Position numbers and translations under genes: made by a program | Source: Octopus sinensis | Lineage: Eukaryota | Assembly: GCF_006345805.1 (NCBI RefSeq) | Contig: NC_043011.1 | Coordinates: 26,672,464 to 26,736,463, forward strand | Length of the DNA: 64,000 nucleotides | Reading direction: 5' to 3' | Shown: in pieces, positions 7,713-36,899 of the stretch | Layout of the letters: every line of letters begins with the position of its first letter | How positions within the stretch are numbered: position 1 is the first letter of the stretch | Notes under the pieces: generated by a model | What the model was told of the DNA's origin: nothing | Database searches by the model: none | The model's input: the letters and a program-made list of their open reading frames with translations, nothing else

Positions 7713-10521
7713 TTTTAAATGAAAGATGGAAGACATCACGAGGAAAAAAAAAACCTTTCCATAAATCATCATCGTTTAACGTCCGTTCTCCATGCTAGCA
7801 TGGGTTGGACAATACAAAATTCTTCACAACCATGTGGTTTCAGGTTCAGTACCACTGCATGGTATCTTGCCCTGCAGCTCGCTGAATCCTACGAAACCAT
7901 CCAATCCATGCCAGCATGGAAAACAGACATTTAATGATGATGATGATGATGCATGAGGGGACAGGTCATTACTGCCCATATCTTGCACACATACACAGCA
8001 ACAAAGAAAACCCATCAGCTCTGGTGCTGGGTGTTAGCAGTGTGAACTGAGCACATTTTATCAAGCCATCATTTAGAGATTGCTCCAATGCAGGGAGGAC
8101 CAAAAACCATCTACCCTGCACCAGTTCTTGCTTGGAGTTACTACTCTCCTAAATGCTCAGCTTGTGATTTATCTATTTTCTGGATTCCACCCTTCACATG
8201 TTCATTCCATTTTCAGCATGGATCCTTAATGAATCATGATATAACAAACGAATTGTGCTACTTTCGAAATTATTTTTTTATAGATTCTTTTCTTTGACTA
8301 CCAAACGATTGTATAGTGTAGCGGAAATGGCCAAGAGATGGACTCATTGCTTTACTCTATCTACTCTTAATATTCAGAGTACAGATGGTTGTGCCATTGG
8401 AGCTGCACACCTAGAGTTTGGTAGATCAGATCTTGTCATTAATGCTGTATGTCTATGGCCAAGACACTTAACTTTAACCTTTAGGCATTCAGATTATTCT
8501 TTTTTTTATTTATTCACATTCATCATCATTGTTTAACGTCCACATTCCATGCGAGCATGGGTTGGACGATTTGACTGAGGACTGGCGAACCAGATGGCTG
8601 CACCAGGCTCCAATCTGATCTGGCAGTTTCTACAGCTGGATGCCCTACCTAATGCCAACCACTCCGAGAGTGTAGTGGGTGCTCTTACGAGCCACTGGCA
8701 CCAGGGCCAGTCAGGTGGTACTGGCAATGGCCATGCTCAAATGGTGTTTTTTACATGCCACCTGCACAGAAGCCAGTCCAGCAGCACTGGCAACGACCTC
8801 GCTCGAATGCTTTCCACGTGCCACCGACATGGAAGCCAGTCAGCTGCTCTGGTAATGATCATGCTCGGGTGGTGCTCTTAGCATTTCACTTGCTTCAACA
8901 GGTCTTTGCAAGCAAAGATTAGTGTCCAATGAAGGAAAGGTATGCATAAGTGGGCTGGTTACACCCCTAGCATAGGCCACAGGTTATGGTCTCACTTGGC
9001 TTGCCGGGTCTTCTTACGCACTGCATATTTCCAAGGGTCTCGGTCACTAGTCATTGCCTCAGTAAGGCCTGATGTTCAAAGGTCATGCTCCACCACATCC
9101 CAGGTCTTCCTCTTCCACAGGTTCCCTCAACTGCTAGGGTGTGGTACTTTTTCACACAGCTATCTTCATCCATTCTCACCACATGACCATACCAACGCAG
9201 TCATCTCCCTTGCACACCACATCTGATACTTCTAACTATTTTGAATTGATCATGCATCATGTCATAGCTTTGAGATTTCAGTGGTGTGATTGTTTATTTC
9301 TGGAATGATATTTTTGGGTAGGTGTGAGAGGTCAGATCTGGTTGGTTTGAACCTTAGACCCTGATCAAAGCCTTGTCAGTGGATTTGGTAGACTGAAACT
9401 GAAAGAAGCCCAATGTATGTGTGTGTTTTTGCGTTTGCCCTCCTACTACCACCTATTTCTTAACTACCCACAAGAGGATAAACACAGAGAGGACAAACAA
9501 GGACAGACACATGGATTAAGTCGATTACATCGACCCGTAACTGGTACTTTATTTATCGACCCCGAAAGGATGAAAGGCAAAGTTGACCTCAGAACGTAAC
9601 GGCAGATGAAATACAGCTACGCATTTCGCCCGGCATGCTAACGATTCTGCCAGCTACTACCACCACCACCATCACTGGTGTTGATTTATGTTCCTGTAAC
9701 ATAGCATTTTGGCAAAAAGAGACTGATAGAATAAGTATCAAGTTTTAAAGTAAGTATTAGAGTTGATTTGATCAACTAAACCTTTCAAGCAATGTAACTA
9801 CAAATGTACTGTGTGGTAAGAAGTTTGCTTCCCTAACACGTGTCTTTGTGTCTGTATTTGCCCCCCCCCCCCACCGCTTGACAACCATTGTTGGTGTGTT
9901 TACATCCCCATAACTTAGCAGTTCAGCAAAAGATACCAAAAGATTTTTTCTTTCTTTGGACTTTTTTGTTCTTTTTCGATGAAGAGCTATACACCAAATG
10001 CCCAAAATTCTCCCTTTTTACTGAGTGTCAAATTAACACATCCCATGTGCACAGGCTCTTGTTGTTCGGTATTCCTTAAAGTTCATTTATTCAATGTTTG
10101 ACTATATATATATGTATAAACACAGGCAAAGTGTGGCTGTGTGATAAGAAGCTTGCTTCCCAACGATGTGGTTTCGGGTTGAGTCCCACTGTGTGGAACC
10201 TTGGCCAAGGGTCTTCTACTATGGCCTTGAGCCAACCAAAGCCTTGTGAGTGAATTTGGTAGATGGAAACTTATACAAGTCCATCATATACATATATGTG
10301 TGTGTGTGTCTTTATATCTAATCTCCTCCACTGCATGACAACTAGTGTTGGTGTATTTATGTCCTTGTAACTTAACAGTTCGGCAAAGGAGACCAATATA
10401 AGTACCAGGCTTATAAAAATAAGTCCTGGGTCGATTTGCTCGACTAAAACCATACAAGGTGGTGCCCCAGCATGGCTGCAAATGACTGAACAAGTAAAAG
10501 ATGAAGATAAAAAAGAAAGAT

Positions 10522-10693
10522 TTATTCGTCTCTTTTCTGAGCAAGAGCAATTTGCACCATTTGAATAATTCCATCATATGTCTTGTTTCCACCTATGAAA
10601 CCTCCTGCATGGACAAAAATACACCCTTTAATACCACTTTTTTCACTCAGTTCTTCATTTCGCAATCCACGCCATTCATCAGGGAGAGACAGT
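10522..10693 (-). CDS. MYG1: MYG1 last coding exon ([56 protein letters not shown])
   Basis: Acceptor ttcttcttgcag; TAA at 10524-10522; conserved C-terminal motifs. Confidence 0.96.
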
Positions 10694-13600
10694 CTGCAAG
10701 AAGAAAAGAAAAAGGAGAGGATAAATTTTGAATTTTGAAAAAATGAAAAAGAGTTAGAATTAAAACAGTTTTGAAAAGATTTTTGGATATCAGCCTACAG
10801 AAAACACAGTAAATGATAAGTATTCAGTTGTTTGATTAAATGAACTACCTGTTATAAAACCTGCATATTAATGGCTGAGTATTCCACAGACATGTGCATT
10901 CTTAACATAGTTGTCAAGCAGATTCAATGTGACAAGGCTGGGTCTTTGAATTACAGATACGACACATCTAAAAGTTTTTGCCAACCCACTTCTTCTAACA
11001 AGGCTTAGGATAACCAACACTCATCATCATCATTGTTTAACATCCGCTTTCCATGCTAGCATGGGTTGGACGATTTGACTGACGATTTGAACCAGATGGC
11101 TGCACCAGACTCCAATCTGATCTGGTAGAGTTTCTACAGCTGGATGCCCTTCCTAATGCCAACCACTCCGAGTGTAGTGGGTGCTTTTATGTGCCACCGG
11201 CATGTGGGCCAGTCAGGCGGTACTGTCAATGGCCACTCTCAAATGGTGCTTTTTATGTGCCACCTGCACAGGAGCCAGTCCAGCGGCACTGGCAACGACC
11301 TCGATCGAATGTTTTTTCACGTGCCACCAGCACAAGTGCCAGTAAGGCGACGCAGGTAACAATCACACTCAAATGGTGCTTTTTACATGACACTGGCATG
11401 GAGGCCAGCTTGTTGCTCTGGCAACGATCACGCTCGTATGGTACTCTTAGCGGTCCACTAGCATGGATGCCAGTCATTGAATTTAATTTCGATTTCACTT
11501 GCCTCAACAGGTCTTTGCAAGCAGAGTATAGTGTCCAATGGAGGAAAGGTACACATAAGTAGGCTGGTTACACCCCTGGCACAGGCCACACTAACTTCTT
11601 TTATCTTTTACTTCAGTCATTAGACCGTGGCCATGCTGGGGCACACACATATGATGGGCTTCTTTCAGTTTTTGTCTATCAGATTCACACCTAAGGCTTT
11701 AGTCAACATGGGGCTATAGCAGAAGACGCTATAAGTGCCATGCAGAAAGACTGAACCCAGAACCAAACTTTTCAACTACATAACCATGCCTGTGCCTTCA
11801 TAAACAGTGAATGTTGTAAAAACAAATTTCTTACCGATTAGTGAAAGATCCCAATTCTACAGGAACACACATAATACGCCAACAGCCATTTTGGTCAGTG
11901 AAGAGAACATATTTTATCTTTGGACTTATATCCATTTCTTGTTCTAATGAAAGTACATGGTCTTTCCATGGACAACCACCATTCTTTAGTAAGAGAACCT
12001 CTCCACTTTTGTCAACCTGGAGAGAAAATATTAATAAAGAATAAGCATTAATTGTTAGTTTAGCAAACATCTTTGTATTTTCCCTAAGCATTTGTGCGTG
12101 TGTGTGTTTGTAACTTTTATCTTTTACTTGGTTCAGTCATTAGACCACAGCCATGCTGCAGCATCACCTTGGCGAATTTATTTTTAGTCTAATGTATCAA
12201 CTTCAGTATTTATTTTATCGGTTTCTTTTGCTGAACAACTAAATTACGGGGACATGAACACACCATCACCAGTTGTCAATCAGTGAGGGTAGGGGGGAGC
12301 AATCACAGACACAAACACACACATACAGGTTCCATCTACTAAATCCACTCACAAGGCTTTGGCCAATCTGAGGCTATAGTTGAAGACATTTGCCCAAGGT
12401 GCCATGCAGTGGAGCTGTACATGGAACCATGTGGTTGGGAAGCAAGCTTCTTTTTTCTTTATTGCCCACAAGGGGCTAAACATAGAGGGGACGAACAAGG
12501 ACAGAAAAAGGGATTAAGTCGATTACATCGACCCCAGTGCGTAACTGGTACTTAATTTATCAACCCCAAAAGGATGAAAGGCAAAGTTGACCTTGGCGGA
12601 ATTTGAACTCAGAACGTAACGGCAGACAAAATACCGCAAAGCATTTTGCCTAGCGTGCTAACGTTTCTGCCAGCTTCTTACCACACAGCCACACCTGGAA
12701 GGTATCAAATATGAACAATGAGTGTGTGAGGGCACATGGCCAAGTAGTTAGGTTGTACTCATGGTTACAGTTTCAATCCCTGGACTGAGCGATGTATTGT
12801 GTTCTTGAGTAAAGAATTTCATCTCACATTGCTCTGCAATCACTTTGACTCCTGACATGTGCTACACCATGCACCTGTACAGGTAATGTTGATTTGACAA
12901 AGGGAGTGAGCTGACGTACAGTGCAAACGTTTGATCATTATAAACAAATCGCCTGTGCAGGTTGTTCAGCGAAAAGTTGCAGAACCCACATCCTTGAATA
13001 AACTGTAATACATACATTATGATTTTCTATTCATTTGTACACACACACAAATGATTTATCATTGATATAAAATCTATAAAGAAATGAATTTAAAATCTTA
13101 TAAACAAAACAAACCTCGTATCTTTCTTCTATTGCTTGTTTGACAATTTTTCTTGCAGGAATCCATGAATTCTTATAAAATGTCACTCGCTCAAGAAATT
13201 CACTGCCAACTAGCTCCATAGCTTTCTTAAACTGATCCTGGAGGAGATTTTAAAAGATGTTACAAAATAAAAAAATTTTTTTTGTCTTTGGTCAATAAGT
13301 GTTATTTCTTATTTGCTTCTATCTAGAAATCAAAGGAAATGATTACTATTTCCTTCAAACTTTGCTTTTAGTGATCTGGACATCAATGTTTTGAAACTGA
13401 CCAATTTTCCATTATATTTCAGACAAATTCATCTTTAAGTTGCTGAAGCAGAAATATCTTTATAACAAATATTCTGCTCAATATCACAGATTTGCTTGTC
13501 AGTTGCTTGATCTTAATCACTTGAGCATGTCCCTTAGTGGTGATAATATGTGCATCTCTAATTATGAGCAGCAGTAGTGGGGGAGCATCATAGCCATGTG

Positions 13601-16600
13601 TTGAGAGAGATTCTTTGGAGTTTGAATAATTGTAACAAAAGCAAAGTTTGAAGGAAATATTAACCATTTTTCATACTTTCTAGGAAATAATAATTGCTAG
13701 CTATGGACAAAAATTGTGTTACACAGTATATTTCATCAAATACAAAAAGAAAGTTAGTTGATTGTGTACTTAAATATTTAAGAGAAGATATGCTTATTAT
13801 GAAACTATTGTGTTTCAATACAATGCAAGAGAAGTATGTAAATTTTCTAGTATGTAAATTTTCTAGCTCCACAGAATATGTCATGAGAATTTGTAAGAAA
13901 GCCCATGTATGCACAAGTTAGTAAAATAGACAAAAAAACGTTTAACTTCAAAAATAGAGCTACATGAGGAAAATGTAAATGTTTAACCCTTCAGTGTTCA
14001 GATGAATCTGTCAAATGTAATGCTTATTTGTTCACATTATTTTGTATTCAGGTTCAAGAGGGGTCTCAACAATATTTGCTTGTAACTTGGTTAATTTTTT
14101 ACATACAGATTTGAAATTTTGTCAGCAGGTGCTTATATAACAGTGGTTTATAGTTATGTAATTTTAGCTGATCTTTCTGATTAAATTTGACTTTTATGGG
14201 CAGGTAAATTTAATTAACAGGTGTAAATCGATTTACGCCATATCATTAAAAACTAAGATATACACTTCTCTTCAAATGTTGAAAACAACCAAGAAGTCTC
14301 CAAAATGTCACTGTATTTTTACTTGAATAAAGGCAAGAAAGACTTTATCCTGCATTATCTCAAAACTATGAGAATTCAATAATGTGATTTATTTTTTTAG
14401 TGATTTTGTAGAGAAATCAGATACAGCCGGATTTGGCCAGTTCAAACAAATAAAGGGGAATTATTTTCTGCCGGTCTGAACACTAACGGGTTCAGTCAGA
14501 GTTATTTAACTAAATCTAATCACACTTCCCATTAGAGCAATAAAGAAAAAACTAGAAGTTATATTAATCATCTTGAAACTATAACCAGCACAAGAATAAA
14601 TTAAGAATAAGAAAATGCTAATATAAAATCCTTTCTACCATAGGCACAAGGCCTGAAATTTTGGGAGTCAGGGGCCAGTCAATACTTTGACCCCTGTATT
14701 CAGCTGGTACTTATTTCATCAACCCTGAAAGGATGAAAGGCAAAGTCGTCCTCACCGAAATCTGGACTCAGGACATAAAGATGGATGAAATGCCGCTAAG
14801 CATTTGTCTGGCATGCTAATGTTTCTCACAGTGCACTGCCTTGAAATGCTAATATAAAATAATTAACAATTATTGAACATAATAAAACTTAAATCAAACA
14901 TACTTCTTCGTTAGTGTCACTGCAATTCCACGCTGGATTCAAACGTGAAACTCGACTGGAGAGATTTGTTGAAATAACGTATCTACAAAAGACAATAAAA
15001 TAAAATAAGGATACTTATATTAAAATATATTTGTACATTTTTACAGTGTTTGTGTGATTAATTTGAATACTATCTTAAAGGATCTTCTAAAACTGCTTTT
15101 TAGTTCTTGTTAAATAAAAAATGGTTTTTAACATAAGCACAAGACCCAACCCCAGTACATAACAGGTACTTTATTTTAATGAATCAGAAACCTAAAAGTA
15201 ACTAATTATCACAAGGCAATTTTGTCTTATGCTCCACTGATTCTGCTAATCTCCTGTTTTGTTCCAATTAAATAATGGTGACAGCACAGATGGTGTTTAA
15301 TGCAATTAAGTATTTTATAAAAGAATTAGTTCTTCACTACCTCACTTTCTTGAGATCAAACCCTGCTGGAATAAACACTTTTTTGCTTACTTGTATTTTA
15401 TTTACCTCTCTTATATTGTAAACCTATACAGGATCCCTGTGAAGGTGCTTGGCTCAGTGGTTAGAGCATGGAGCTCACAATCATGAGGTAGTGAGTTTGA
15501 TCTCCAGACCAGGCTGTGTGTTGTGTTCCTGAATAAGACACTTTATTTCATGTTGCTCAGCTGTAGAAATGAGTTGTGGCATCTCAGGAGCCAAGCTGTA
15601 TCAGCCTTTGCCTTTCTCTTGGATAACGTCAGTGGCACGGAGAGGGGAGGTTGGTATGCATGGGTGACTGCTAGTCTTCCATAAACAACCTTGCCTGGAC
15701 TTGTGCCTCATCCACCAAACCCACTGACAAGGCTTTGGTTAGCCTTAGGTTAGACACTTTATTTCATGTTGCTCAGCTGTAGAAATGAGTTGTGGAATCT
15801 CTGGAGCCAAGCTGTATCAGCCTTTGCCTTTCTCTTGGATAACGTCAGTGGCACGGAGAGGGGAGGTTGGTATACATGGGTGACTGCTAGTCTTCCATAA
15901 ACAACCTTGCCTGGACTTGTGCCTCATCCACCAAACCCACTGACAAGGCTTTGGTTAGCCTTAGGTTAGACACTTTATTTCATGTTGCTCAGCTGTAGAA
16001 ATGAGTTGTGGCATCTCAGGAGCCAAGCTGTATCAGCCTTTGCCTTTCTCTTGGATAACGTCAGTGGCATGGAGAGGGGAGGTTGGTATGCATGGGTGTC
16101 TGCTGGTCTTCCATAAACAACCTTGCCTGGACTTGTGCCTCATCCACCAAACCCACTGACAAGGCTTTGGTTAGCCTTAAGGTATAGTAGAAGACACTTG
16201 CCTAAAGTTCCACACAGTGGGACTGAACCCCAAACCACGTGGTTGGGAAGTAATCTTCTTACCACACAGCTATGCCTGCACCTTATCATCATCATCGTTT
16301 AACGTCCGTTCTCCATGCTAGCATGGGTTGGACGGTTCGACCGGGGATCTGGGAAGCCAGAAGGCTGCACCAGGCTCCAGTCTTATCTGGCAGTGTTTCT
16401 ACAGCTGGATGCCCTTCCTAACGCCAACCACTCTGTGAGTGTAGTGGGTGCTTTTTACGTGCCACCTGAACAGGTGCCAGGCGAGGCTGGCAACGGCCAC
16501 GGTCGGATTGGTGTATTTTATGTGCCACCGGCACGGAAGCCAGACGAGGCGGAGCTGGCATCGGCCACGAGTCAGATAGTGCTTTTTACGTACCACCAGA

Positions 16601-19600
16601 CCAGGGATCCTGGCTGGTTCAATTCGATTTCGCTTGCCCCAACATGTCTTCACAAGCAAGGGGGTTGGCATGGGTGCCTGTCGTACGGTCAGATTGGTGT
16701 ATTTTACGTGCCACCGGCACGGAAGCCAGTAGAGGCGGCGCTGGCATCGGCCACGAGTCGGATAGTGTTATATATACATTAACTATATATGCATTTAATA
16801 CTGATTACAAACATTTTCATATTCACACACCAAAAGAGACAAAAAGATAGAGAAAATGTGCAAAAATAAAAAAACAAGAAACATTTTTTGTAGTTACTTT
16901 GGTGTACAATCACACTGATTGATTCCATTGTCTATCCCATCTATTTCTTCAATGAAACGTTCGTAAACTTTATCAAAAATTATCGTCACAATTTTATTGT
17001 CTTCTTTGCCACATTTCAAAATATTCTGGATGATACGTTCACCAAAATGGTAATACACCAAACCAGCACTGCTCAGTTTAGTTGTCCACTTCTTGCTTGA
17101 ATTTAAGCTTGACATTGATTCATTAAATGATCTGTATAAAATATGAAAAGAAATATAACATATTTAAAGACCGTATTTCCTTAAATTAGAACAAAAAATA
17201 ATTATCATCATCATCGTTTAACGTCCGTTCTCCATGCTAGCAGGGGTTGGATGGTTCGACCGGGGATCTGGGAAGCCAGAAGGCTGCACCAGGCTCCAGT
17301 CTGATCTGGCAGTGTTTCTACAGCTGGATGCCCTTCCTAATGCCAACCACTCTGTGAGTGTAGTGGGTGCTTTTTACGTGCCAGGCGAGGCTGGCAACGG
17401 CCACGATCAGATTGGTGCTTTTTATGTGCCACCGGCACGGAAGCCAGTCAAGGTGGCGCTGGCATCAGCCACGTTCGGATGGTGCTTTTATGAGCCACCT
17501 GCACAGAAGCTCCAACTCAGAACTGGAATGAAAAATCCTGCAATGTAATTCAATTCCATCATCATCATCATCATCATCATCGTTTAGCGTCCGTTTTCCA
17601 TGCTAGCATGGGTTGGACGGTTCTACTGGGGTCTGTGAAGCCAGAAGGCTTCATCAGGCCCAGTCAAATCTGGCAGTGTTTCTACGGCTGTATGCCCTTC
17701 CTAACGCCAACCACTCCGAGAGTGTAGTGGGTGCTTTTTACGTGCCACCCGCACAGGTGCCAGACAGAGCTGGCAAACGGCCACGAACGGATGGTGCTTT
17801 TTATGTGCCACCGGCACGAGGGCCAGGCCAGGCTGGCAACGGACACGAAACGGGGCGGTGCTGGCAACGGTCGTGAAACGGAAGGTTCTCTTACATGCCA
17901 CCGGTACTGGTAACACATCTGCAATTTCCATTGATCGATTTCCATTGATCGGTTTCGATTCTGATCTTTAATTTTATATCAATTCATATTTAAGCCAAAA
18001 CTTTCAAAGGGCCCAAGCTCACTGAGGCAATCTACTTATATGTTAATAACCCTTAACAATCCCATTACAGACCTTTTTTACCCAGCTGTTATTTGTACTT
18101 AGTTTGTACCAAACATTCACATTGCGCATTAACAGACAATATTCAACTTAATTTTTCTTCAAGTGTCTTATGCTGACATAACTTCGATAAATTGCTAGAA
18201 TAAATATTAGTATAACCAGAGATTTTTTCCTTATGCCAGTCATTTAAAAAAAAAGAAGGGGAATTATTTTTAGTTGAAGCATGTAAACATATACTACCCA
18301 AGATTGTTCTAACACAAAGCAGTTCTGTTTGTGACTGAGGTGTAAGAAGCAGAATATTTCAGAAAAGGTTAAATAGCTAGATCAGTCCAGAATTTGAGTT
18401 AAGATTGTACTTCTTCTTCTTAAATCCCTAGCTAGCAACTGGAGAAGGAGGCTGTCCTCTCAACCAATATGCTGCTGTGGGTACCACTGGATGATAGAGT
18501 CTGGTGATGATATTATTCCACGCTTTCCAATCCATGGTGCTGGCCTTAGCCTTTAAGATTTAGGTATCTAGCCTAACACTTACTTTAAACTACAAAAGTT
18601 TGGCCAGACAAATGTACTTAAGCACCTGGAAGAAGATATCAAGGCAACACTGTTGTAATAGTTTGAATCCATTATTTCAACCATTGTACACCATCATCAC
18701 TTGTCACTCAACACCCACTTTTGCATGCTTACATGGGTCAGACAGAATTTGATGAGGCGACATGTTTTTCACAGAAAATTGGAAACAACCTTGCTTACGT
18801 GATGTTGTTGCTTGTTTACGGGAGGGGAGGGGAGAGAGAAAGAGGCAGGCAGGCAAGCAGGTAGGTAGGTAGATAGATAATATAGATAGACAGACAGACA
18901 GATAGATAGATATGTTTCTTTATTAGCCACACAGGGCTGCACACAGACGGGACAAATTACAAGGTAGAGCTTTTCTTTTGGAGATAAAAAAGGGGGTTTG
19001 GTTTTCGATCAAAAGGGATCGTAAAAGGAAAGAAAGAGGAAAGCAAAAAAAAAGGCGGGGGGCATAAAAATAAAAGGAAAAGGAAACAAAAATAATTCAA
19101 TAGGGATTGTTATCACAGAAATGTGATAGATAGACAGAGACAGATAGAGAAATAGATAGATCTACTAGGGGTTCCTTCCAGTTTCCATCAATCAAATCCA
19201 CTTACAAGGCTTTTTTTGGGCAGGAGTTATATGAGAAGACACTTGCCCAACATGCTGCAGAGTGAGACGGGACCCAAGACCACATGGTTGAGAAGTAAGC
19301 TTCTTAACCACATAGGTACGTCTGCACCTATTTGTACAGAGATAGGGAAATAAAAGTAATAAGCAAAAATTGTATTTAATCAGTGTCATTTTGAGAGAAT
19401 AGCAAAACAGATTCACATAAAGTTTCTTACCGTTGATGATGATCAAATCGGAATGTAGAAGGATCGTACACACCACCAACATCAACTACAATATCACAAG
19501 TAGCCAACTTTTCAGAATCACGGGTTCTGGAATATAAGGAAAAAGCAAATATATTTATTCATATAAAGTCAAGTTACAGAATATTATATTTCTTTTTTTC

Positions 19601-21240
19601 ACTGCTTTCACAGATTCCCATGACTCTCGGTCACCATCCAATTCCATTTTTATGAATTTGAATTGGAAGCTTGAGTCATAGTGAATCTTTCATTAGCTTA
19701 TTACACAACCATGGATGTCACTTCTAAAGATGTGTTACAGTTACTCTCTTGATAGAGCTTGGTCATCTTGACCGTTGATCTTCTAGGATTCCTCTACTCA
19801 GTACCAATGTAAGAAGTACCATTGGCTCAGTTGAGCTCTTCTGCTACCTCTTCACAATCTGTCACGTTGCAGTCCCATGACTTTGCCGTATCCCTGGACA
19901 GGTGCTATACTTTGCCAAAGGGCAACCTGTAACTATACAGGGCATGGTCATCACTCATCGAAGTATTTTCAAAATACTTGCACATTGCTGTTTTACAAGA
20001 TGCTACATGCAAAGTCCACCACAAGATCAAGTTCTTGTTGTGCTCTGGTGGCTCGTGTGCTTCAATGACCCTAAGAACTATGCCAGTGGAACACAAGCTC
20101 TTTGTAGAGCCTCCTATGCTTGACAGGTCACAGGGTAGAAGTCAGAATATATGGAACACTTCTTCCCTTGGGTTTATATAAGGCCCAACAACCTTACCTA
20201 GATTTCTCAATGCCAAGTTTCAAGAACATCAGAGACAATTTAAAACCAATAAGACCTGGGAGAAGAAGGCCTTCCTTTGGGAAAACATGGGATACTAAAG
20301 TAGAGCTGCAAAAGCAGAGAAGCTTCTCAACCAGCATTCTATGTAACATGTTGAGAACAGGAGAAAACCCATGCCAGCATGGAAGGTGGACATTAAATGA
20401 TGATGATGATCCACACATATATATATGTAATGATCTTCTAGTGTCCATCTACTAAAGCCACTCACAAGGCTTTGGTAAGCCCAGGGCTATAGTAGAAGAA
20501 ACTTGCCCAAAGTGCTACACAGTGGGACTGAACTGAACCTGAAATTAAGTGGTTGGGAAGCAAACTTCTTACCACACAGCCACACTTGCACCTCATATTA
20601 TATCCGAATATAAAATTATATTTACCTGATGATAGTGGAATCTTCGTATTCAGGAAGCAATCTGAGAAGAAAACAGGCTAAAGCTTCGTCACAATGGAAA
20701 GTACCATTATGTGTTCCAATTTTCTTGACCATGGCAGATTTTTTTGCAGTGCCTGAATTATCTGAGGAGTTCTCAGCATGGCTGCAAAGTAATTTAATAA
20801 TAATAATAATAATAAAATAAACAACTACCTGCTGGCCAGATACCCAACACATTACACACACAGCACAAACACTAATACGACAAAAGACTGCATCAGACCT
20901 TATAACAAAAGAAACTGATGCAATACAATACCAGGAAGAGTTTGCCCTCCCCTAACAACAAAGGGGAACACACCCCAGCATCATGGAGGTGTAGCAGCTG
21001 ATGCAGTATTTACCTGAAACAACCAAATGCTGAACAATAACAATCCTTTCTACTAAAGGCACAAGGCCTGAAATTTTGGGGGAGGGGACTAGTCGATTAC
21101 ATCAATCTCAGTGTTTCACTGGTACTTAATTTATAACCATACGCCTATATATATATATATATATATTAGAAGTAATTAAGTATCCTTACTGCTCTATATT
21201 TTTGAGTGTGCTTATTTTTCGGATATATGATACACTGATG

Positions 21241-21275
<35 letters not shown>

Positions 21276-24200
21276 ATCATGTTGAACTATACAATTTTTT
21301 CTCTCACCGTTTTTTTCCCTCTTAATCCTTTCTGTTGAAGAGCATAGGCTTGAAACATAAAAGACTTTTCCATTCTACCTGAGCATTAAACTAATACACC
21401 CGCTTGTTGTTCTTACACCTGTCTTTGTCTTTTGCTTTCTGTAAATTTGAACTATATATATAATAGTATTTTATAAGCTTAAAGCTTATAAGCGATCACC
21501 GCGCAATGACTAACGAAAATAGTCTAATATTGGGATGTATAAACCCTGACGGAAAAAAAAAAGGTTTTCCTGTATGCATGGTACTCGAACCCACACCTCT
21601 CAGTTTTCGCAACAAGTGTGCTAACCATTTACACCAACATACAACCTCCACATACAATGTTAGCACACTTGTTGCGAAAACTAAGAGATGTGGGTTCGAG
21701 TCCCATGCATACGGGAAAACTTACAGTCAAACTAAAGTTTTTGACCCTAGCGAAAAGAAAAAAAAATAGTGCAATAGGTGTACAACATGTAGTAAACGAA
21801 CATGAAAATTAAAAATTCGCGCTGTTGGGGAGGCGACTTGGAAAATTCACACGACCAATCTTACAGGATCCAAAAACTCAACGTTAACACCTGGTCACAA
21901 AAATGAAAAAAAAAATAGTGTACTAGGTGTAAAATAATGTGAAGTAAACGAGTATGAAGAAAAAAAAAAATTCGCCGACGAACGGGAAAAGTGGTGAGAG
22001 GATTCAGAACATTCTCGATGTGAATTTTCCGAGTTAAACCCCCACCCACCCCGTTTCCCAGCGTGCATTTAAAAAAAATATTCGTTTACTACATGTTGTT
22101 CTACACTTATACTATTTTTTTTTTTGCTCGGGTCAAACACTGGAGTTTAAAGGTCACGGTTAGAATTTTCTGAGCCCCCACCTCACCCCGTTCACCAGCG
22201 CGCATTTCTTTTCTTTTTTATATTCGTTTACATGGTACTTGTCTATTGTCGTGGTCCCGGTTTCGCACACGCGAATTCGCGCGTGCGCGTTACACCCCCC
22301 CCCTAAAAAAAGGTGTTGGATTTCACTAAAAATATATATGTGTGTGTGTGTGTGTGTATATATAACATTTTCAATTTTACACAAAAAAATTACATAGTCG
22401 CTTTCCTCGCGGATTTACAGATAAATGAATTAATTACTATTTTACAGAATAAAATTAATGAATTAATTATATAAATTAAATAATTCTTGAAAATTAATTA
22501 ATATTAATAATATTTTTTGAACAAAGTAAATAATTTATAAAACTTGGTTAATAATTTTTTTTACACAAACGCGAACGTATATAATTTGTGAAACTTTTTT
22601 TTTTTTACAGACGTATATAATTTGGTAAACTTAATGAATTAATTTCTTCTCATCATCATCATCGTTTAACGTCCGTTCTCCATGCCAGCATGGGTTGGAC
22701 GGTTCGACCGGGGATCTGGGAAGCCAGAAGGCTGCACCAGACTCCAGTCTTATCTGGCAATGTTTCTACAGCTGGATGCCCTTCCTAACGCCAACCACTC
22801 CGAGAGTGTAGTGGGTGCTTTTTACATGCCACCCGCACAGGTGCCAGGAGAGGCTGGCAACGGCCACGGTCGGATTGGTGCCAGTCGAGGCGGCTCTGGC
22901 ATCGGCCACGATTCGGATAGTGCTTTTTACGTACCACCAGTCCAGGGGTCCTGGCATTTGCCGGGTGCCACACTTGCCCCAACATGTCTTCGCAAGCAAG
23001 GGGGTTGGCGTGGGTGCCTGTCGTGGGATGAGGTTCGATATCAACTTCGCTTGCCTCAACAGGTCTTTGTGTATAAATGTATAAATTTTTCGCACTAAAT
23101 TCTTTCCGTAGAATTTATCAAAAAACGCGCAAAATTATTCCGTAGAATTTATCAAATTAAAAAACGCAAAATTAATATATTTTTTGAAATTGCAAATTAT
23201 TTAGAATATAAAACAAATGAAGTTAAATTTTAAAAATAAATGTCATATACTTATACTCTGTAAGGTGCTGTGTTCACACTTCAATTTACTATTTTCTAGA
23301 AATGTTGCTTTTCTAATTGAAACAATTTTTCTCAATCTCCATTTAAAAGTCCATAATGCCTCTTGAGCCATATCAAAATGAACAACTTTATACGTTCGCG
23401 TTTGTGTAAAAAAAATTATTAACCAAGTTTTATAAATTATTTACTTTGTTCAAAAAATATTATTAATATTAATTAATTTTCAAGAATTATTTAATTTATA
23501 TAATTAATTCATTAATTTTATTCTGTAAAATAGTAATTAATTCATTTATCTGTAAATCCGCGAGGAAAGCGACTATGTAATTTTTTTGTGTAAAATTGAA
23601 AATGTTATATATATACACACACATATATATTTTTAGTGAAATCCAACACCTTTTTTTTAGAGGGGGGGTTAACGCGCATGCGCGAATTCTGCACTGCGCA
23701 TGCGCAAGTCACCTCGTAGGATCTCGAGTATCGAGTACCTACGTCTCGCGCGCGCGCGCGAATTCGCGTGTGAGAAACCGGGACCACGACAATAGACAAG
23801 TACCCGTTTACATGTTGTTTTACACCTATTACACTTTTTCTTTTTCATTTTTGTGACCGGGTGTTAACGTTGAGTTTTCGGATCCTGTGAGATTTGATCG
23901 TGTGAATTTTCCGAGTTGTCTCCCCGCAACTCCCGTTCGCCAGCGTGCATTTTTTTTCTTTTTTCATATTCGTTTTCTACATGTCGTTTTACACCTATAA
24001 CACTATCTTTTTATCATTTTTGTGACCGGGTTTGACCAAACTTTCTTTTATCTGCCCCATTATTAAGCTATTTTCTTTAGTCATTGCGTGGGTTCGATTC
24101 TCTGACTGGGCAGCGCGATTTGTTGTTGAGCAAATCACTTCATTTCACATTGCTCCAGTCTCACTTCGATCAGGGAGAAATGTTGGCCTGCTCGCCTAGC

Positions 24201-26087
24201 CGGTGATGTGGCGTCATTTGAAGGCTAAAATGCAAAACAATGCGTTTTGTGCCTAACAATGTGTAACAACATCAATTGTAAAAATACAATAGGATTTGTG
24301 GCGATCTTTCGTTTGTAGTAACACGTTTCCGTCGATGATTTCCGTAAAAAACTTTTATTTTTTTTACATATGGGCTTGCGGGAACATTTGAAGTAATGAG
24401 AGCGAAAGAGACTAAGAGGAAGCGATTGTATGACGAGGGAATTTCTTTTGAAGTTACCGAAGCATTGTTGTACATGTGTGTTTGATGGGGTGTGGGAGAC
24501 AGACAGTATGTTGTGTAAGTGAAGTGCTTCTGTTAGTGTGTGTGAAGAGACAGAGAGAGTGTGTGAAAGAGAGAGATAACTGAAATTTTTTACTCGGTGT
24601 ATGTGTATATGTATGTATGCATGCATGTATGTGTATGTGTGTATGTATCTATGTATGTGTGTATGTATGGCGGATTCAGTGTAATTTTTTACTCGGTGTA
24701 TGTGTGTGTGTGTATGTATCTATGTATGTGTGTATGTATGTATGGCCGATTCAGTGTAATTTTTTACTTTGTTTTAAAACGTCGAATAGCTAAGAGACTC
24801 CATCCAAAGTAAAATAGGAATCAACTTAGAATCCTCCAAGTTGAGAACTAGTTATAGACAAACAAACGTTGATATTTTGAACGTATTTAATACACGTGTT
24901 TCTAATAGTTTTACGAGTTGTTACGCAAGATAGTTCTTAAGTAAGAACTTATATTACTCGAAACGTGTATTAAATGCATTCAAAATATCAGAATATGAAC
25001 ATCTGGTTTTGTAGTTACCTATAGATAAGGCGGCATGATTAAATTCGCGGAGACAGCGAAAACAGGTTAACCGAAAAGGGCGAAGTTTCGCTTGTAGCAC
25101 AAGTTTTCCGTCGATTTCCGTAAAAAACTTTTATTTTTTTACATAAGTAATGAGAGCGAAAGAGACTAAGAGGAAGCGATTTTATGACGAGGGAAGTTTG
25201 TCTTTGAAGTTACCGTCTAGGGGAAGCATTGATGTACATGTGTGTGTGTGTGTGTGTGTGTGTTTGATGGGGTGTGGGAGACAGTATGTTGTGTAAGTGA
25301 AGTGCTTCTGTTAGTGTGTGTGAAGAGACAGAGAGAGTAATGTGTGAAAGAGAGAGATAACTGAAATTTTTTACTCGGTGTATGTGTATATGTATGTCTG
25401 CATGTATGTGTGTGTGTATGTATGTGTAAGTATGTGTGTGTGTGTGTATGTATGTATGGCCGATTCATCGTAATTACGATGAATCGGCCATACATACATA
25501 GATACATACACACACACACATACATGCAGACATACATATACACATACACCGAGTAAAAAATTTCAGTTATCTCTCTCTTTCACACATTACTCTCTCTGTC
25601 TCTTCACACACACTAACAGAAGCACTTCACTTACACAACACACTGTCTCCCACACCCCATCAAACACACACACACACACACATGTACATCAATGCTTCCC
25701 CTAGACGGTAACTTCAAAGACAAACTTCCCTCGTCATAAAATCGCTTCCTCTTAGTCTCTTTCGCTCTCATTACTTATGTAAAAAAATAAAAGTTTTTTA
25801 CGGAAATCGACGGAAAACTTGTGCTACGACAAGCGAAACTTCGCCCCGAGGCGAAGTTTCGCTTCCGCATTTTAATGACTTTCGCGGTTTTTTTTCAATT
25901 CAATACAATTATAACAAAAATATACTTTTCTGATAGAGAATTCAGAACAGAGTATCATCTGTACACTTGTAATCGCAAATACATACCTTCGTTTCAAATG
26001 TGAGTCACTGATCATTTTACAAAATGTAGTTGTTCCGGAAAAGCAAAATATTACCTGTGTAGAAAATACTCTAATTAACGATAGCAT
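10522..26087 (-). CDS. MYG1: MYG1 exonuclease (UPF0160, DHH-like 3'-5' RNA exonuclease), complete gene: join(26087-25987,20781-20626,19526-19431,17131-16898,14982-14904,13237-13115,12016-11835,10693-10522), 380 aa
   Basis: Manual splicing gives a continuous 1143-nt frame with GT-AG introns and matching phases. Family motifs present: [93 protein letters not shown]. Confidence 0.97.
11835..12016 (-). CDS. MYG1: MYG1 exon 7 ([20 protein letters not shown]...[12 protein letters not shown])
   Basis: Acceptor ttttctctccag, donor CG|GTAAG. Confidence 0.96.
13115..13237 (-). CDS. MYG1: MYG1 exon 6 ([41 protein letters not shown])
   Basis: Acceptor ctcctccag, donor GAG|GTTTGT; 123 nt, phase 0/0. Confidence 0.95.
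13987..14490. mobile_element. piggyBac-type MITE (second TIR family) in MYG1 intron 5
   Basis: ttaa-CCCTTCAGTGTTCAGA ... TCTGAACACTAACGGG-ttca; a related left end occurs near 33247. Confidence 0.65.
14630..14843 (-). mobile_element. SINE family C with 17-bp TSD
   Basis: AAATGCTAATATAAAAT at 14613-14629 and 14844-14860. Confidence 0.9.
14904..14982 (-). CDS. MYG1: MYG1 exon 5 ([26 protein letters not shown])
   Basis: Acceptor gtcttttgtag, donor GAA|GTATGT; conserved LSSRVxxLNPxWN. Confidence 0.95.
15536..16179 (+). repeat. Tandem triplication, 216-bp unit made of two fused SINE fragments
   Basis: AGACACTTTATTTCATG starts at 15536, 15752 and 15968; only a few substitutions between units. Confidence 0.95.
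16285..16760 (-). mobile_element. SINE family A (RTE-type 3' end, (GAT)n tail, internal ~55-60-bp minisatellite), representative copy
   Basis: CATCAT-CGTTTAACGTCCG..CATGCTAGCATGGGTTGGACG..CTGGATGCCCTTCCTAACGCCAACC. Copies also at 8520-8935, 11025-11580, 17205-17520, 17560-17960, 22648-23070 and 32700-32900 (minus), and 40620-41085 and 58874-59055 (plus). Confidence 0.85.
16898..17131 (-). CDS. MYG1: MYG1 exon 4 ([31 protein letters not shown]...[17 protein letters not shown])
   Basis: Acceptor ttttatacag, donor AA|GTAACT; overlaps track ORF 16894-17115. Confidence 0.96.
19431..19526 (-). CDS. MYG1: MYG1 exon 3 ([32 protein letters not shown])
   Basis: Acceptor ttatattccag, donor CG|GTAAG; DHH motif; not in the ORF track. 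Confidence 0.96.
20626..20781 (-). CDS. MYG1: MYG1 exon 2 ([52 protein letters not shown])
   Basis: Acceptor ttactttgcag, donor AG|GTAAAT; [11 protein letters not shown] metal-binding motif. Confidence 0.96.
21290..21460 (+). mobile_element. Penelope-like terminal fragment with a degenerate minimal hammerhead-like motif (21327-21365)
   Basis: CCTTT-CTGTTGA-AGAGC-ATAG-GCTT-GAAA-CATA-AAAGA has the layout of type I minimal hammerheads of Penelope elements, but with core mismatches. Confidence 0.35.
21564..21720. repeat. Inverted repeat made of two tRNA-like sequences; cloverleaf-like 74-nt unit on minus 21643-21570
   Basis: Arms 21564-21624 and 21659-21720. Minus unit has acceptor stem TGTATGT/GCATACA, D stem GTGT/GCAC and T loop GGTTCGAGT; the anticodon stem does not pair. 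Confidence 0.8.
22234..23804. mobile_element. Non-autonomous long-TIR DNA transposon with 9-bp TSD (Mutator/MULE-Foldback type)
   Basis: Perfect 9-bp TSD CGTTTACAT (22225-22233, 23805-23813). TIRs start GGTACTTGTCTATTGTCGTGGTCCCGG; near-identical arms 22234-22581 and 23389-23804. Confidence 0.85.
24300..24770 (+). mobile_element. Single-arm copy of the same Merlin-like MITE family
   Basis: Starts GGCGATCTTTCGTTTGTAG..TTTCCGTCGA..TTTCCGTAAAAAAC and follows the left arm of 25079-25473; no right TIR found. Confidence 0.75.
24870..24990. repeat. Small inverted repeat (~31-bp arms) with an internal palindrome
   Basis: TGATATTTTGAACGTATTTAATACACGTGTTTC versus inverted GAAACGTGTATTAAATGCATTCAAAATATCA; the loop contains AGTTCTT-aagt-AAGAACT. 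Confidence 0.75.
25079..25845. mobile_element. 767-bp loopless palindromic MITE (Merlin-like family)
   Basis: Ends GGCGAAGTTTCGCTTGT / ACAAGCGAAACTTCGCC; centre GGCCGATTCATCGTAATTACGATGAATCGGCC at 25473/25474; arms differ mainly in microsatellite length. Confidence 0.85.
25987..26087 (-). CDS. MYG1: MYG1 coding exon 1, mitochondrial-presequence-like ([33 protein letters not shown])
   Basis: ATG at 26087. Donor CGAAG|GTATGT at 25987 is phase 2 and joins the 20781 acceptor (C-CAT-GCT) in frame with no stop. No acidic residues in the first 24 aa; R-x-F-S-T motif; resulting length is close to vertebrate MYG1. Confidence 0.8.
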
Positions 26088-34800: not shown

Positions 34801-35464
34801 CTTCTTTTCTGGATCCTCATTGATGATGTTATCAAGACAGCTGTTAATTTATGAAGACATGGCTTTTTTGTTGAAGGAGAGATAGTTGTGCAATGTGGTA
34901 AGTACTAATTTTAGCGGGTCCAAGCGCTCCCCCTGCACTATCTGCTCCCAGGCCCATGCTTGTATATCTACATGTATATATGAGAGATAATTTTAAGAAA
35001 TCGATAATTTATGTTGTACAGTATTTGATATACTTGTATTTATCTACGTTCAAATATATGCCACTGGCCACACTGAGTTATTTCTTTTATTCCATTTTTG
35101 TTTAAACTATTCAAATTACCCAGGCCATAAATGCATTCTGTTCCTTTTTGTATTAATCTGTTTCTTGGCTACGAGAGAATAGACTGGATAATTGTTATGC
35201 TGATGATGGCTATTTATCCAGAAACATGTGCTCTTGACTATCATCTTATATCTAGGCAATAAGTCTGTCCTTTTCCTTAATGGAATGTTTGACTTTTGAG
35301 AATTCTTGAATCTGAAGATTATCTCCCCTTCTCAAGTGAAGCTGGTCTTAATTACTAAAGGAAGAGATAATGTTAATAAATCAAGAATTTATACTGTATA
35401 ATATTTGATATACCTGTATTTTTGTGAGTGCACACATACACACACACACACACGTACACACATA

Positions 35465-35754
35465 CAGGAGTTAAGGAATGGAGTGGATAAGATCCAGGCT
35501 ACATATGTTTCATAGCGAGCGGAAACTTGGAAGTGGTAAATATCAAAGCGAGTTGTATACCACAGGCTACTCTTCAGGCCAAGGATATCTTGATTAAATG
35601 TAAGTTTACATTGTCACAAGGAGGGACATGTTAACACAGGGAAGATTCGATTAGAATGTGTAGAGAGCACAGTAGGAGTGGAGAATATCCGAGGTTCCAC
35701 TGGCTATGAAACAGATGTAGCCTGGATCTTATCTATTCCATTCCTTAACAATTG
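35465..35754. mobile_element. TA-flanked MITE with ~52-bp TIRs (Tc1/mariner-type)
   Basis: TA-CAGGAGTTAAGGAATGGAGTGGATAAGATCCAGGCTACATATGTTTCATAGC versus the reverse complement of the right end CAATTGTTAAGGAATGGAATAGATAAGATCCAGGCTACATCTGTTTCATAGC-TA. Confidence 0.75.
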
Positions 35755-35919
35755 TATTCTTATTTGCATACATGGCAACCCTGGTTGCCCACTGTGAAAT
35801 ATAAAAAGAACCATTTTCAGTTTATTGTACTTTGATAAGAAAAAAAATCCACAACCTTTCGTCTCAATAAACCACTATTGTCCCTGAAAGTTAGCATGGA
35901 ACACAGACGTTAAATGATG

Positions 35920-36344
35920 GGCGATCTTTCGTCTCTAGTAGACCTTTCCGTCGATTTCCGTAAAAAATTTTTTTTTTTTCACATATGGGCTTGCAGGAAC
36001 TTTTGAAGTAATATACATATACACATACACCGAGTAAAAAATTTCAGTTATCTCTTTCTTTCACACATTACTCTGTCTCTTCACACACACTAACAGAAGC
36101 ACTTCACTTACACAACATACTGTCTGTCTCCCACACCCCATCAAACACACACACACACACACACACATATACATCAATGCTTCACATGCACGCTAACTTC
36201 AAAAGAACTTCCCTCGTCATACAATCGCTTTCTCTTAGTCTCTTTCGCTCTCATTACTTCAAAAGTTCCCGCAAGCCCATACGTAAAAAAAAAAAAAATT
36301 TTACGGAAATCGACGGAAAGGTCTACTAGCGACGAAAGATTGCC
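35920..36344. mobile_element. Internally deleted Merlin-like MITE with 8-bp TSD, inserted in a SINE tail
   Basis: TIR GGCGATCTTTCGTC..TAGTAGACCTTTCCGTCGATTTCCGTAAAA at both ends; exact TSD AAATGATG (35912-35919, 36345-36352). Confidence 0.85.
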
Positions 36345-36899
36345 AAATGATGATGATTAATGATGTATATGTATATATCTATGTGTGTGTGTCGAAGTTT
36401 GTTCTCCCCATCTCCCCTTGACAACTGGTGTTGATGTGTTTACATCTCCGTAACTTAGCGGTTCGGCAAAACAGACCGATAGAGTAAATACTAGGCTTAA
36501 AATAATTTTTTGGGGTCGATTTGTTCGACTAAAACCCTTCAAGGCGGTACTCCAGCATGGCCGCAGTCAAATAACTGAAATAAGTAAAAGACTAAAAGAA
36601 TATGTTACACACACACACACACAAGAACATGTTTAACAGCCATATTCAAAACTCAATGTGAATGCCAAATAAGCTATCTTTAACGTAGCGTGTTTGCGCA
36701 AGTGTGCGTGTGCATGTGTGTGCGTACGTTCGTGTGTGTGTGTGTGTGTTAGTTTGTATAATGTAAACATATAGAAAACGCGCTCGTGCCTTTCATGCAT
36801 GTACCCATGTGTGTTTCGTTTTTCTTTTTGTGCTGAGGAAAGGAAAAAAAAAAAAAGAACAAAAAAAAAAGCAAGCAGATAACTTTTTTTTTCCCTCTC

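Follow-up and report, generated by a model that had tools for sequence, protein, structure and literature searches.

Within the 64-kb window of Octopus sinensis DNA analysed here, the minus strand carries MYG1 (UPF0160), whose homologues bear the PF03690 domain and whose protein spans the exons on either side of the intron that is the subject of this work. The spliced 330-aa model is identical to XP_029645916.1, isoform X2 of O. sinensis MYG1, and its junctions are GT-AG throughout. Exon 2 (20626-20781, minus strand), located by tblastn with MYG1 homologues, provides the start methionine of isoform X2 and a conserved 17-residue motif. In the 380-aa isoform X1, the coding part of exon 1 (26085-25987, minus strand), 33 codons in an open frame matching the N-terminus of XP_029645915.1, is joined to exon 2 at 20781. 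Intron 1 (20782-25986, minus strand; 5,205 nt) lies between them, with GT at 25986-25985 and AG at 20783-20782, and this junction is the one used by the annotated 380-aa isoform; the exon 1 donor, AAG/GTATGT at 25986, is the same in three octopus species. The exact match to XP_029645916.1 and the exon 1 junction of X1 confirm the first-pass annotation of this DNA, which had assigned the intron to MYG1 and described exon 1 as encoding an N-terminal peptide, here a 33-residue extension that is presumably mitochondrial.

Intron 1 is a strong outlier inside the window for its content of inverted repeats. Counting inverted pairs separated by up to 3 kb, 2,781 nt (53%) of the intron are covered, versus 4.7% of the remaining window (an 11-fold difference), and the next-best 5.2-kb stretch holds only 604 nt in such pairs. 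All five inverted-repeat systems previously described, as well as a spare arm, were recovered at the same positions. One is delimited by a 45-nt inverted pair (21499-21543 and 24047-24091; 80% complementary), with additional matches between modular arms at 21753-21954 and 23801-24019 (78%). The others are a 157-nt hairpin (21564-21720), a long-armed element (22234-23804), a small hairpin (24870-24990) with a stem of about 30 bp, and a palindrome (25079-25845) that aligns to itself over 798 columns at 91.7%, with 0 nt between its innermost arms. The spare arm, 24300-24686, can pair with 25472-25845 at 80%. It had also been claimed that nothing comparable exists in the other 12 annotated introns; for the window at large this holds only in relative terms, since smaller hairpins do occur outside intron 1, at 58564-58830 (113-nt arms, 95%), 57973-58123, 35462-35757, and 35920-36344.

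Folding of the sense (minus) strand of intron 1 gives a minimum free energy of -2335.8 kcal/mol, i.e., -0.449 per nt, whereas eleven other 5.2-kb tiles used as controls range from -0.229 to -0.293 per nt and twelve dinucleotide shuffles of the intron reach -1194.6 +/- 20.6 kcal/mol (z = -55 for intron 1). Helices of at least 25 bp are predicted to total 1,040 bp, including stretches of 181, 160, 225, and 101 bp, compared to 0-548 bp in the control tiles. The earlier estimate of more than 1 kb of double-stranded RNA per pre-mRNA is thus in line with the intramolecular duplex predicted for the sense strand. Inverted copies lying in one transcription unit and predicted to form a long, near-perfect duplex are also what characterizes substrates of ADAR hyper-editing.

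The system at 21499-24091, element A, resembles Foldback elements and measures about 1 kb once the interrupting element B is discounted. It has 45-nt termini, and its arms, built of 140-169-bp sub-repeats, are 78.6% identical. An uninterrupted A is found in O. vulgaris (L002, 14015-15025), with three direct and two inverted modules, and the sequence of the arms establishes a Foldback-style construction from tandem modules. The 157-nt hairpin sits in the left part of A, and its two tRNA-like arms (21564-21625 and 21659-21720) are 62 nt long and 94% complementary. On the minus strand, 21570-21643 gives a tRNA match of 26.8 bits, below the gathering score of 29, and ARAGORN finds no tRNA. No second copy of A, B, or the 157-nt hairpin was found in about 120 kb of octopus DNA; among these three, direct proof of mobility, read from insertion-site sequence, exists for B only.

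Element A is missing from O. bimaculoides. There, the breakpoint (21054/21055) falls within a unit (21033-21138, minus strand) that resembles a SINE and has an (ATT)n tail, and it shows no target duplication, which argues that A was lost by deletion rather than never inserted; A may thus be an ancient element kept over a long period. As the block 21055-24206 lacks a target duplication, a Helitron was considered, which would begin with 5'-TC, end with CTRR-3', and lie between A and T. In gene sense, the block does begin with TC after an A, but its 3' end reads ...CCTTTA with G as the next base, and the opposite strand does not fit either; the Helitron was consequently rejected, and the junction is instead a deletion breakpoint within the SINE-like unit.

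Element B (22234-23804) is a 1,571-bp non-autonomous DNA transposon with terminal inverted repeats (TIRs) of 356 and 423 nt (22234-22589 and 23382-23804). These are 95.3% identical over 318 nt, with a 240-nt core at 99% and 56-nt termini at 96%. The element is flanked by a perfect 9-bp target-site duplication, with CGTTTACAT at both 22225-22233 and 23805-23813 (plus strand), and the orthologous O. vulgaris site lacks B and has a single ATGTAAACG copy, its flanks otherwise matching. This clean empty site, together with the duplication, shows that B, a long-TIR element, inserted into a sub-repeat of A after the split between O. sinensis and O. vulgaris. B in turn contains a SINE copy (22640-23060, plus strand), to which at least 12 other copies in the window are related; across roughly 120 kb of octopus DNA, 35 hits were obtained. 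The first-pass description of nested fold-back elements is therefore apt, with B within A and a SINE within B.

With TIRs of hundreds of base pairs and a 9-bp target duplication, B resembles Foldback and long-TIR non-autonomous Mutator-like elements (Drosophila FB, MULEs), and the structural instability of the intron 1 locus is a further likeness. However, tandem sub-repeats, the hallmark of Drosophila FB, are absent from the arms of B (no tandem array was reported there by TRF) and present in those of A. A differs as well in having no verified target duplication, and neither element is linked to a transposase. The length of the target duplication is the single character by which B would be placed with Foldback or Mutator-like elements.

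The remaining large structures belong to a different family. The loopless palindrome (25079-25845; 767 bp) consists of a truncated MITE dimerized head to head. Besides the family terminus (GGCGAAGTTTCGC...), each arm contains internal sequence and a TG/TATG microsatellite, and the two arms are 95.3% identical over 363 nt. At 24298-24768 (plus strand) lies a MITE half-copy that includes the spare arm. It has one terminus (at 24300), no second terminus, and a 75-bp internal tandem duplication, and is 78.8% identical to the left arm of the palindrome. A terminus scan combined with a three-species junction comparison additionally revealed a solo terminus of the same family (25850-25868, plus strand), left behind where O. 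sinensis has lost about 2 kb by deletion. The family terminus thus occurs at 24300, 25079, 25845, and 25850 in intron 1.

Outside the intron, a 425-bp copy (35920-36344) serves as the reference for the family. Its TIRs (35920-36012 and 36252-36344) span 93 nt at 92.5% identity, and it sits in the tail of a SINE, flanked by the 8-bp duplication AAATGATG at 35912-35919 and 36345-36352. The family has the structural traits of MITEs, namely TIRs, a target duplication (in the 36-kb copy), and small, non-coding, multi-copy units: at least three copies occur in the window, and O. vulgaris intron 1 contains five termini. Shared sequence thus assigns both the palindrome and the half-copy to this dispersed family, whose TIRs measure 93 nt and whose target duplication is 8 bp long. 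Such traits are those of MITEs with 8-bp duplications, in the range of hAT, P, Merlin, and Mutator, but the TIRs are unusually long and the intron copies are not canonical, being a palindromic dimer and a one-ended fragment. A hAT assignment agrees with the 8-bp duplication, seen at one copy, but not with the 93-nt TIRs, when short ones are expected, nor with the terminus GGCGA(A/T)(C/G)TTTCG, which we take to be unlike the short hAT-type terminus. Placement in any superfamily would here, too, draw on target-duplication length alone.

Comparison among octopus species shows how labile the array is. In O. sinensis, intron 1 measures 5,205 nt and has 1,040 bp in long helices; the corresponding figures are 5,632 nt and 1,390 bp for O. 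vulgaris, but only 1,058 nt and 29 bp for O. bimaculoides. The O. bimaculoides intron has neither the palindrome nor the half-copy, the latter with a clean junction, and carries only the small hairpin (24870-24990; fold z = -7.2), the sole fold-back common to all three species, whose conservation is unexceptional for intron 1. About 2 kb of array kept by O. vulgaris has been lost in O. sinensis; at the site corresponding to 25850, O. vulgaris retains about 270 bp of ancestral sequence and extra copies of the MITE family. The aligned sequences thus attribute the difference in MITE copy number between the sister species to a deletion of about 2 kb.

Taken together, these observations make it very probable that non-autonomous DNA transposons of the cut-and-paste kind have piled up, nested in one another, in MYG1 intron 1, along with SINE fragments. 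By their structure, the fold-back systems are the transposons' own TIRs. None of the ten intron 1 ORFs, nor those of B and of the MITE family, contains a Pfam domain, and the elements all lack coding capacity; exact look-ups of the intron 1 ORFs matched no other contigs. Such a pile-up is ordinary for a genome already known to be rich in these structures: repeats make up about 66% of the O. vulgaris genome, in which hAT, Mutator, Merlin, and MITE families have been active in the recent past (PMC13282606). The null explanation offered at first, transposon accumulation near a promoter, is the best fit. Transposases encoded elsewhere would have mobilized the elements in trans, and their concentration in intron 1 may reflect a preference for inserting close to promoters, local hopping, and the insertion of one element into another. 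The palindromic dimer could be the product of a MITE copy that underwent aberrant repair or template switching. Upon MYG1 transcription, the arms would snap back into an intramolecular duplex of about 1 kb, probably hyper-edited by ADAR, as are thousands of other octopus intronic repeats. The intron would then be spliced out and degraded, the duplex being a by-product rather than a selected function.

Part of the structure might instead have formed in place, replication template switching or inverted duplication of local sequence, rather than separate insertions, having given rise to the palindrome and to A's modular arms, a possibility that we regard as unlikely. The palindrome indeed departs from a canonical element, being the dimer of a truncated copy, the half-copy lacks its second terminus, no clean target duplications are demonstrable at the intron 1 copies of the family, and copy number changed locally between the sister species. 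However, what was duplicated is a mobile MITE in its own right, which elsewhere has TIRs and a target duplication, and B is a proven insertion. Formation in place would thus complement the transposon explanation without replacing it.

The cluster could also be a functional, lineage-specific source of long double-stranded RNA, acting in ADAR buffering or titration, in the production of anti-transposon small RNAs, or in splicing of the N-terminal-peptide exon, but this seems very unlikely. The stable duplex predicted for the sense strand, with its stems of 181, 160, and 225 bp, the still stronger signal in O. vulgaris, and the annotation of isoforms with and without the 33-residue extension would be compatible with such a role. 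ADAR activity on octopus intronic hairpins is, moreover, documented (PMC5625713; PMC9699675). Among 19 species, octopus has the highest hyper-editing and potential to form double-stranded RNA, which comes mostly from neighbouring inverted or palindromic repeats (PMC5625713). Hyper-editing of the intron 1 arms is thus plausible, but generic for octopus. The predicted duplex recalls the inverted Alu pairs and palindromic Harbinger repeats that serve as ADAR substrates (Porath et al., 2017), with inverted repeats in one pre-mRNA predicted to form a long near-perfect duplex; it differs in that the arms are mostly TIRs of a single element, not separate repeat copies.

Against a special or selected role, to which nothing points, stands the instability of the cluster over a short evolutionary time, with the insertion of B, the loss of about 2 kb, and the absence of the array from the short O. 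bimaculoides intron. Substitutions between the palindrome arms are mostly uncompensated (four, versus one concerted change), and transposon structure accounts for all hairpins. The proposed influence on splicing of the peptide exon was not borne out: MYG1 isoforms with and without this peptide are both annotated in O. bimaculoides, which has no cluster, so that isoform choice is independent of it, and editing in O. vulgaris, found mostly in introns and 3'UTRs, very rarely alters splice sites (PMC9699675). The suggestion of endo-siRNAs is likewise at odds with a survey of molluscs, including O. bimaculoides, that reported no siAgo, no siDicer, and no Dicer-signature small RNAs (PMC12479628). 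Drosophila hpRNA loci do share with intron 1 a long inverted repeat and a potential snap-back RNA, but they need a dedicated Dicer-2/AGO2 pathway, reported absent in molluscs (PMC12479628), and nothing in intron 1 suggests small RNAs or conserved targets. From this we infer that the duplex has no function. Fainter still is the prospect that this duplex of 1.0-1.4 kb, though built from transposons, has come to exert a regulatory effect in the O. vulgaris and O. sinensis lineage; ADAR binding or slow unwinding might, for instance, delay removal of intron 1 and shift the balance between the isoforms with and without the N-terminal peptide relative to O. bimaculoides.

Least credible of all is an assembly artefact, in which the palindrome and perhaps other arms would be chimeric long-read fold-backs: zero-spacer palindromes are a recognized failure mode of long-read libraries, the O. 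vulgaris copy (approximately L002, 12324-13036) is perfectly self-complementary over 343 bp per side, and the two assemblies disagree by about 2 kb over the array, but the palindrome occupies the orthologous position in both of these independent assemblies, has unique flanks on either side, coincides exactly at both ends with the MITE-family terminal sequence, and shows 4 substitutions and 29 indel columns between its O. sinensis arms, unlike a read-level fold-back.

MYG1 intron 1 matters little as a source of double-stranded RNA, since duplexes formed by intronic repeats are documented to be the rule in octopus, and no sign of selection is seen here; the locus, being well characterized, could nonetheless provide a positive control when hyper-editing or dsRNA pull-down is assayed in Octopus. 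Its palindromic MITE array provides an example of how quickly such structures gain or lose kilobases. The presence or absence of B is a marker separating the sibling species O. sinensis and O. vulgaris, and B, together with its perfect O. vulgaris empty site, is clean evidence for very recent cut-and-paste DNA-transposon activity in O. sinensis.

Intron 1 of MYG1 in Octopus sinensis is host to nested elements with transposon structure, including one dated insertion, shows a local change in copy number and has strong predicted intramolecular pairing. When the seven homology-supported minus-strand exons of the gene are spliced, with internal junctions that are all GT-AG, they give a 330-aa protein that is 100% identical to XP_029645916.1, isoform X2 of the MYG1 exonuclease of this species. 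In isoform X1 (XP_029645915.1, 380 aa), the N-terminal 33 residues are encoded at 26085-25987 on the minus strand and spliced onto exon 2 at 20781. The annotated intron 1 therefore corresponds exactly to 20782-25986; its donor (AAG/GTATGT) and acceptor (TTGCAG/CC) are kept in O. vulgaris and O. bimaculoides. A model of exon 1 from a downstream ATG (356 aa) was dropped, as the annotated isoform begins 24 codons further upstream. Judged by their composition and by MYG1 in other animals, the 33 residues plausibly form a putative mitochondrial presequence. Isoform X2 is encoded by two accessions, XP_029645916.1 and XP_036365463.1, which implies more than one 5' end, with first exons that may sit within intron 1 or upstream of it. 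As to the gene as a whole, it spans ~15.6 kb in O. sinensis (10500-26085) versus 7.8 kb in O. bimaculoides (10001-17812 of L001, the comparison locus of that species), i.e., about twice as much; the extra length outside intron 1 is apparently mostly SINE copies (e.g., 16282-16684, 17204-17489, and 17568-17797), and intron 4 has a 216-bp unit repeated three times in tandem (15536-16179, 97% matches).

The inverted-repeat systems that the first-pass annotation had named in intron 1 were all found in place: a 157-nt hairpin (21564-21720), element A (21499-24091) with element B (22234-23804) nested in it, a spare arm (24298-24768), a small hairpin (24870-24990), and a palindrome (25079-25845) with 0 nt separating its innermost arms. 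Inverted pairs whose members lie within 3 kb of each other cover 2,781 nt (53%) of the intron and 4.7% of the window remainder, the best other 5.2-kb window having 604 nt. The sense-strand minimum free energy is -2335.8 kcal/mol (-0.449 per nt), versus -0.229 to -0.293 per nt for eleven other tiles. By such measures, the intron is an outlier relative to 59 kb of adjoining sequence. Twelve dinucleotide shuffles gave -1194.6 +/- 20.6 kcal/mol (z = -55) and 26-171 bp in long helices. The minus-strand fold places 1,040 bp in predicted helices of at least 25 bp (0-548 bp in the eleven other tiles), in agreement with the more than 1 kb of dsRNA proposed earlier. That nothing comparable occurs elsewhere holds in degree, but smaller hairpins are present at 58564-58830, 57973-58123, 35462-35757, and 35920-36344. 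The first of these is MITE-like, with 113-nt arms that are 95% complementary, termini TTGTTGTGTCTGGGGAGAG... and TA-rich flanks; by synteny with the O. vulgaris comparison locus (L002), it lies inside the adjacent divergent gene, which encodes a protein with USP8_dimer and UCH domains.

Element B has arms of 356 and 423 nt, with termini that are 96% complementary and a 240-nt core in which complementarity reaches 99%. A perfect direct repeat of 9 bp, CGTTTACAT, flanks it on both sides. The orthologous site of O. vulgaris reads ...AAAACAAC ATGTAAACG AATATAAAAAAG..., with the 9-mer present once only and flanks that otherwise match; as this site is unoccupied, the transposition of element B into O. 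sinensis postdates the separation of the two species. The element sits within one of the sub-repeats of element A and itself contains a SINE (22640-23060) that has dozens of related copies nearby. The 9-bp duplication and long terminal inverted repeats (TIRs) of element B are like those of Mutator/Foldback-type long-TIR non-autonomous elements, whereas its arms are without tandem sub-repeats and no transposase was linked to it. Element A is uninterrupted in O. vulgaris (L002 14015-15025), where it is ~1 kb long with 45-nt termini, and its arms are built of modules of 140-169 bp, three one way and two the other. This modular architecture is like that of Foldback elements, although without a verified target duplication. 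With arms that are only 78.6% identical, similar to the 82-84% at which the intron of O. sinensis matches that of O. bimaculoides, element A may be old.

The palindrome and the spare arm have the same terminus, GGCGA(A/T)(C/G)TTTCG, as a 425-bp element at 35920-36344, which has 93-nt TIRs (92.5%) and an 8-bp duplication, AAATGATG, made inside a SINE tail. This element is a MITE, and its family fits this class in its TIRs and target duplication as well as in size, copy number and the absence of coding capacity; hAT, P, Merlin, and Mutator would all be consistent with the duplication, while the terminus is unlike hAT in appearance. The O. vulgaris comparison locus stops short of this copy, and the corresponding O. 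bimaculoides stretch falls within an assembly gap. The palindrome is a truncated copy dimerised head-to-head, and the spare arm a one-ended fragment. In O. vulgaris, the orthologous palindrome (L002 about 12326-13007) is perfectly self-complementary over 343 bp either way from its midpoint, despite 2-4 substitutions per arm between the two species, which hints at arm-to-arm homogenisation or at assembly over-polishing. Selection for pairing was considered and rejected: across the four arms, four uncompensated substitutions against one concerted change are uninformative or negative, and nothing in the sequences would suggest such selection.

The arms of the 157-nt hairpin are tRNA-like and probably derive either from the head of a tRNA-derived SINE, duplicated in inverted orientation, or from a tRNA pseudogene: a tRNA match at 21570-21643 on the minus strand has 26.8 bits (E = 0.02), below the gathering score of 29, and ARAGORN gave no tRNA gene. 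No Rfam family reaches its gathering score; at E<=1, the only other matches are low-complexity TG/CA look-alikes of mir-466 and mir-297. The elements are non-autonomous, as no Pfam domain turned up in any of ten intron ORFs, and an exact look-up of these ORFs for read-assembly or transcript contigs returned none.

Comparison with the two other octopuses shows how much the intron has varied. It measures 5,205 nt in O. sinensis and 5,632 nt in O. vulgaris, where the minimum free energy is -0.522 per nt with 1,390 bp in long helices, versus 1,058 nt, -0.215 per nt and 29 bp in O. bimaculoides, whose assembly has gaps near the locus and none within MYG1. After exon 1, O. vulgaris has ~270 bp of ancestral intron common to O. 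bimaculoides, followed by extra MITE-family copies (L002 10226-12300); relative to this stretch, O. sinensis has a deletion of ~2 kb at 25846-25868, whose breakpoint adjoins a 19-bp solo terminus of the MITE family (25850-25868), so that the array is structurally unstable. With the insertion of element B, intron 1 has therefore gained 1.6 kb and lost ~2 kb within the short divergence between O. sinensis and O. vulgaris. The block at 21055-24206 could be taken for an insertion specific to these two species, but in O. bimaculoides the junction marks where a deletion took place: it has no target duplication and falls inside a SINE-like unit (21033-21138) that is contiguous in all dispersed copies and complete in O. 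sinensis and O. vulgaris, while O. bimaculoides (L001 about 10906-10925) keeps just the final ~16 nt of the unit together with the (ATT)n tail. Judged from this junction, the deletion removed whatever lay between 21055 and 24206. A Helitron reading of the 3.15-kb block fails on its termini, which do not match.

The only fold-back of the intron common to all three species is the small hairpin (region 24862-25013 on the minus strand, L001 10595-10740, and L002 13110-13260), with a fold z of -7.2. Its identity between O. sinensis and O. bimaculoides is 92%, versus 82% for the rest of the intron, but another intron stretch reaches 94.7%; with no compensatory pairs and arms absent from the available part of the supplements of the octopus miRNA paper, a miRNA or other ncRNA was rejected. 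Candidate identities for the hairpin are an old MITE, a block with a regulatory role, and a portion of an alternative 5' exon.

The null explanation of the first-pass annotation, transposon accumulation near the promoter, is the best fit to these data. The elements would have been mobilised in trans, and their build-up in intron 1 would come from insertion close to the 5' end of MYG1, renewed insertion nearby, and nesting. For O. vulgaris, hAT, Mutator, Merlin, and MITE families with recent activity have already been described (PMC13282606), and elements A, B and the palindrome family match known kinds; the locus is therefore another case of these and no new kind. The original observation is thus confirmed and its interpretation partly supported, and the feature is an ordinary one.

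As a rough estimate of how common such structures are, we take the octopus genome to be ~2.7 Gb. The genomic fraction able to form long near-perfect dsRNA is exceptionally high in O. bimaculoides, 4.4 x 10^-3, and octopus long dsRNA comes mostly from neighbouring inverted or palindromic repeats (PMC5625713). This fraction would correspond to the order of 10^4 dsRNA-forming structures and, by chance alone, to hundreds of 5-kb windows with at least two of them.

Among the proposed consequences of this dsRNA, endo-siRNAs are disfavoured by a clade-wide survey that found molluscs, O. bimaculoides included, to be without siAgo, siDicer, or small RNAs of Dicer signature; in the view of its authors, such dsRNA may be melted by editing instead (PMC12479628). 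An effect on the targeting-peptide exon is unsupported, as the 380-aa and 330-aa isoforms are both annotated in O. bimaculoides, which is without the cluster. O. bimaculoides has the strongest hyper-editing among 19 species (Porath et al., PMC5625713), and editing in O. vulgaris falls mostly in introns and 3'UTRs, which are enriched in hairpins, with splice sites very rarely altered (Zolotarov et al., PMC9699675). Under transposon accumulation, the arms would fold back in the MYG1 pre-mRNA, the duplexes would be edited by ADAR, and the intron would then be removed and degraded. By analogy, hyper-editing of the intron 1 hairpins is plausible and would be generic, this sequence of events being the usual course for intronic repeats in octopus.
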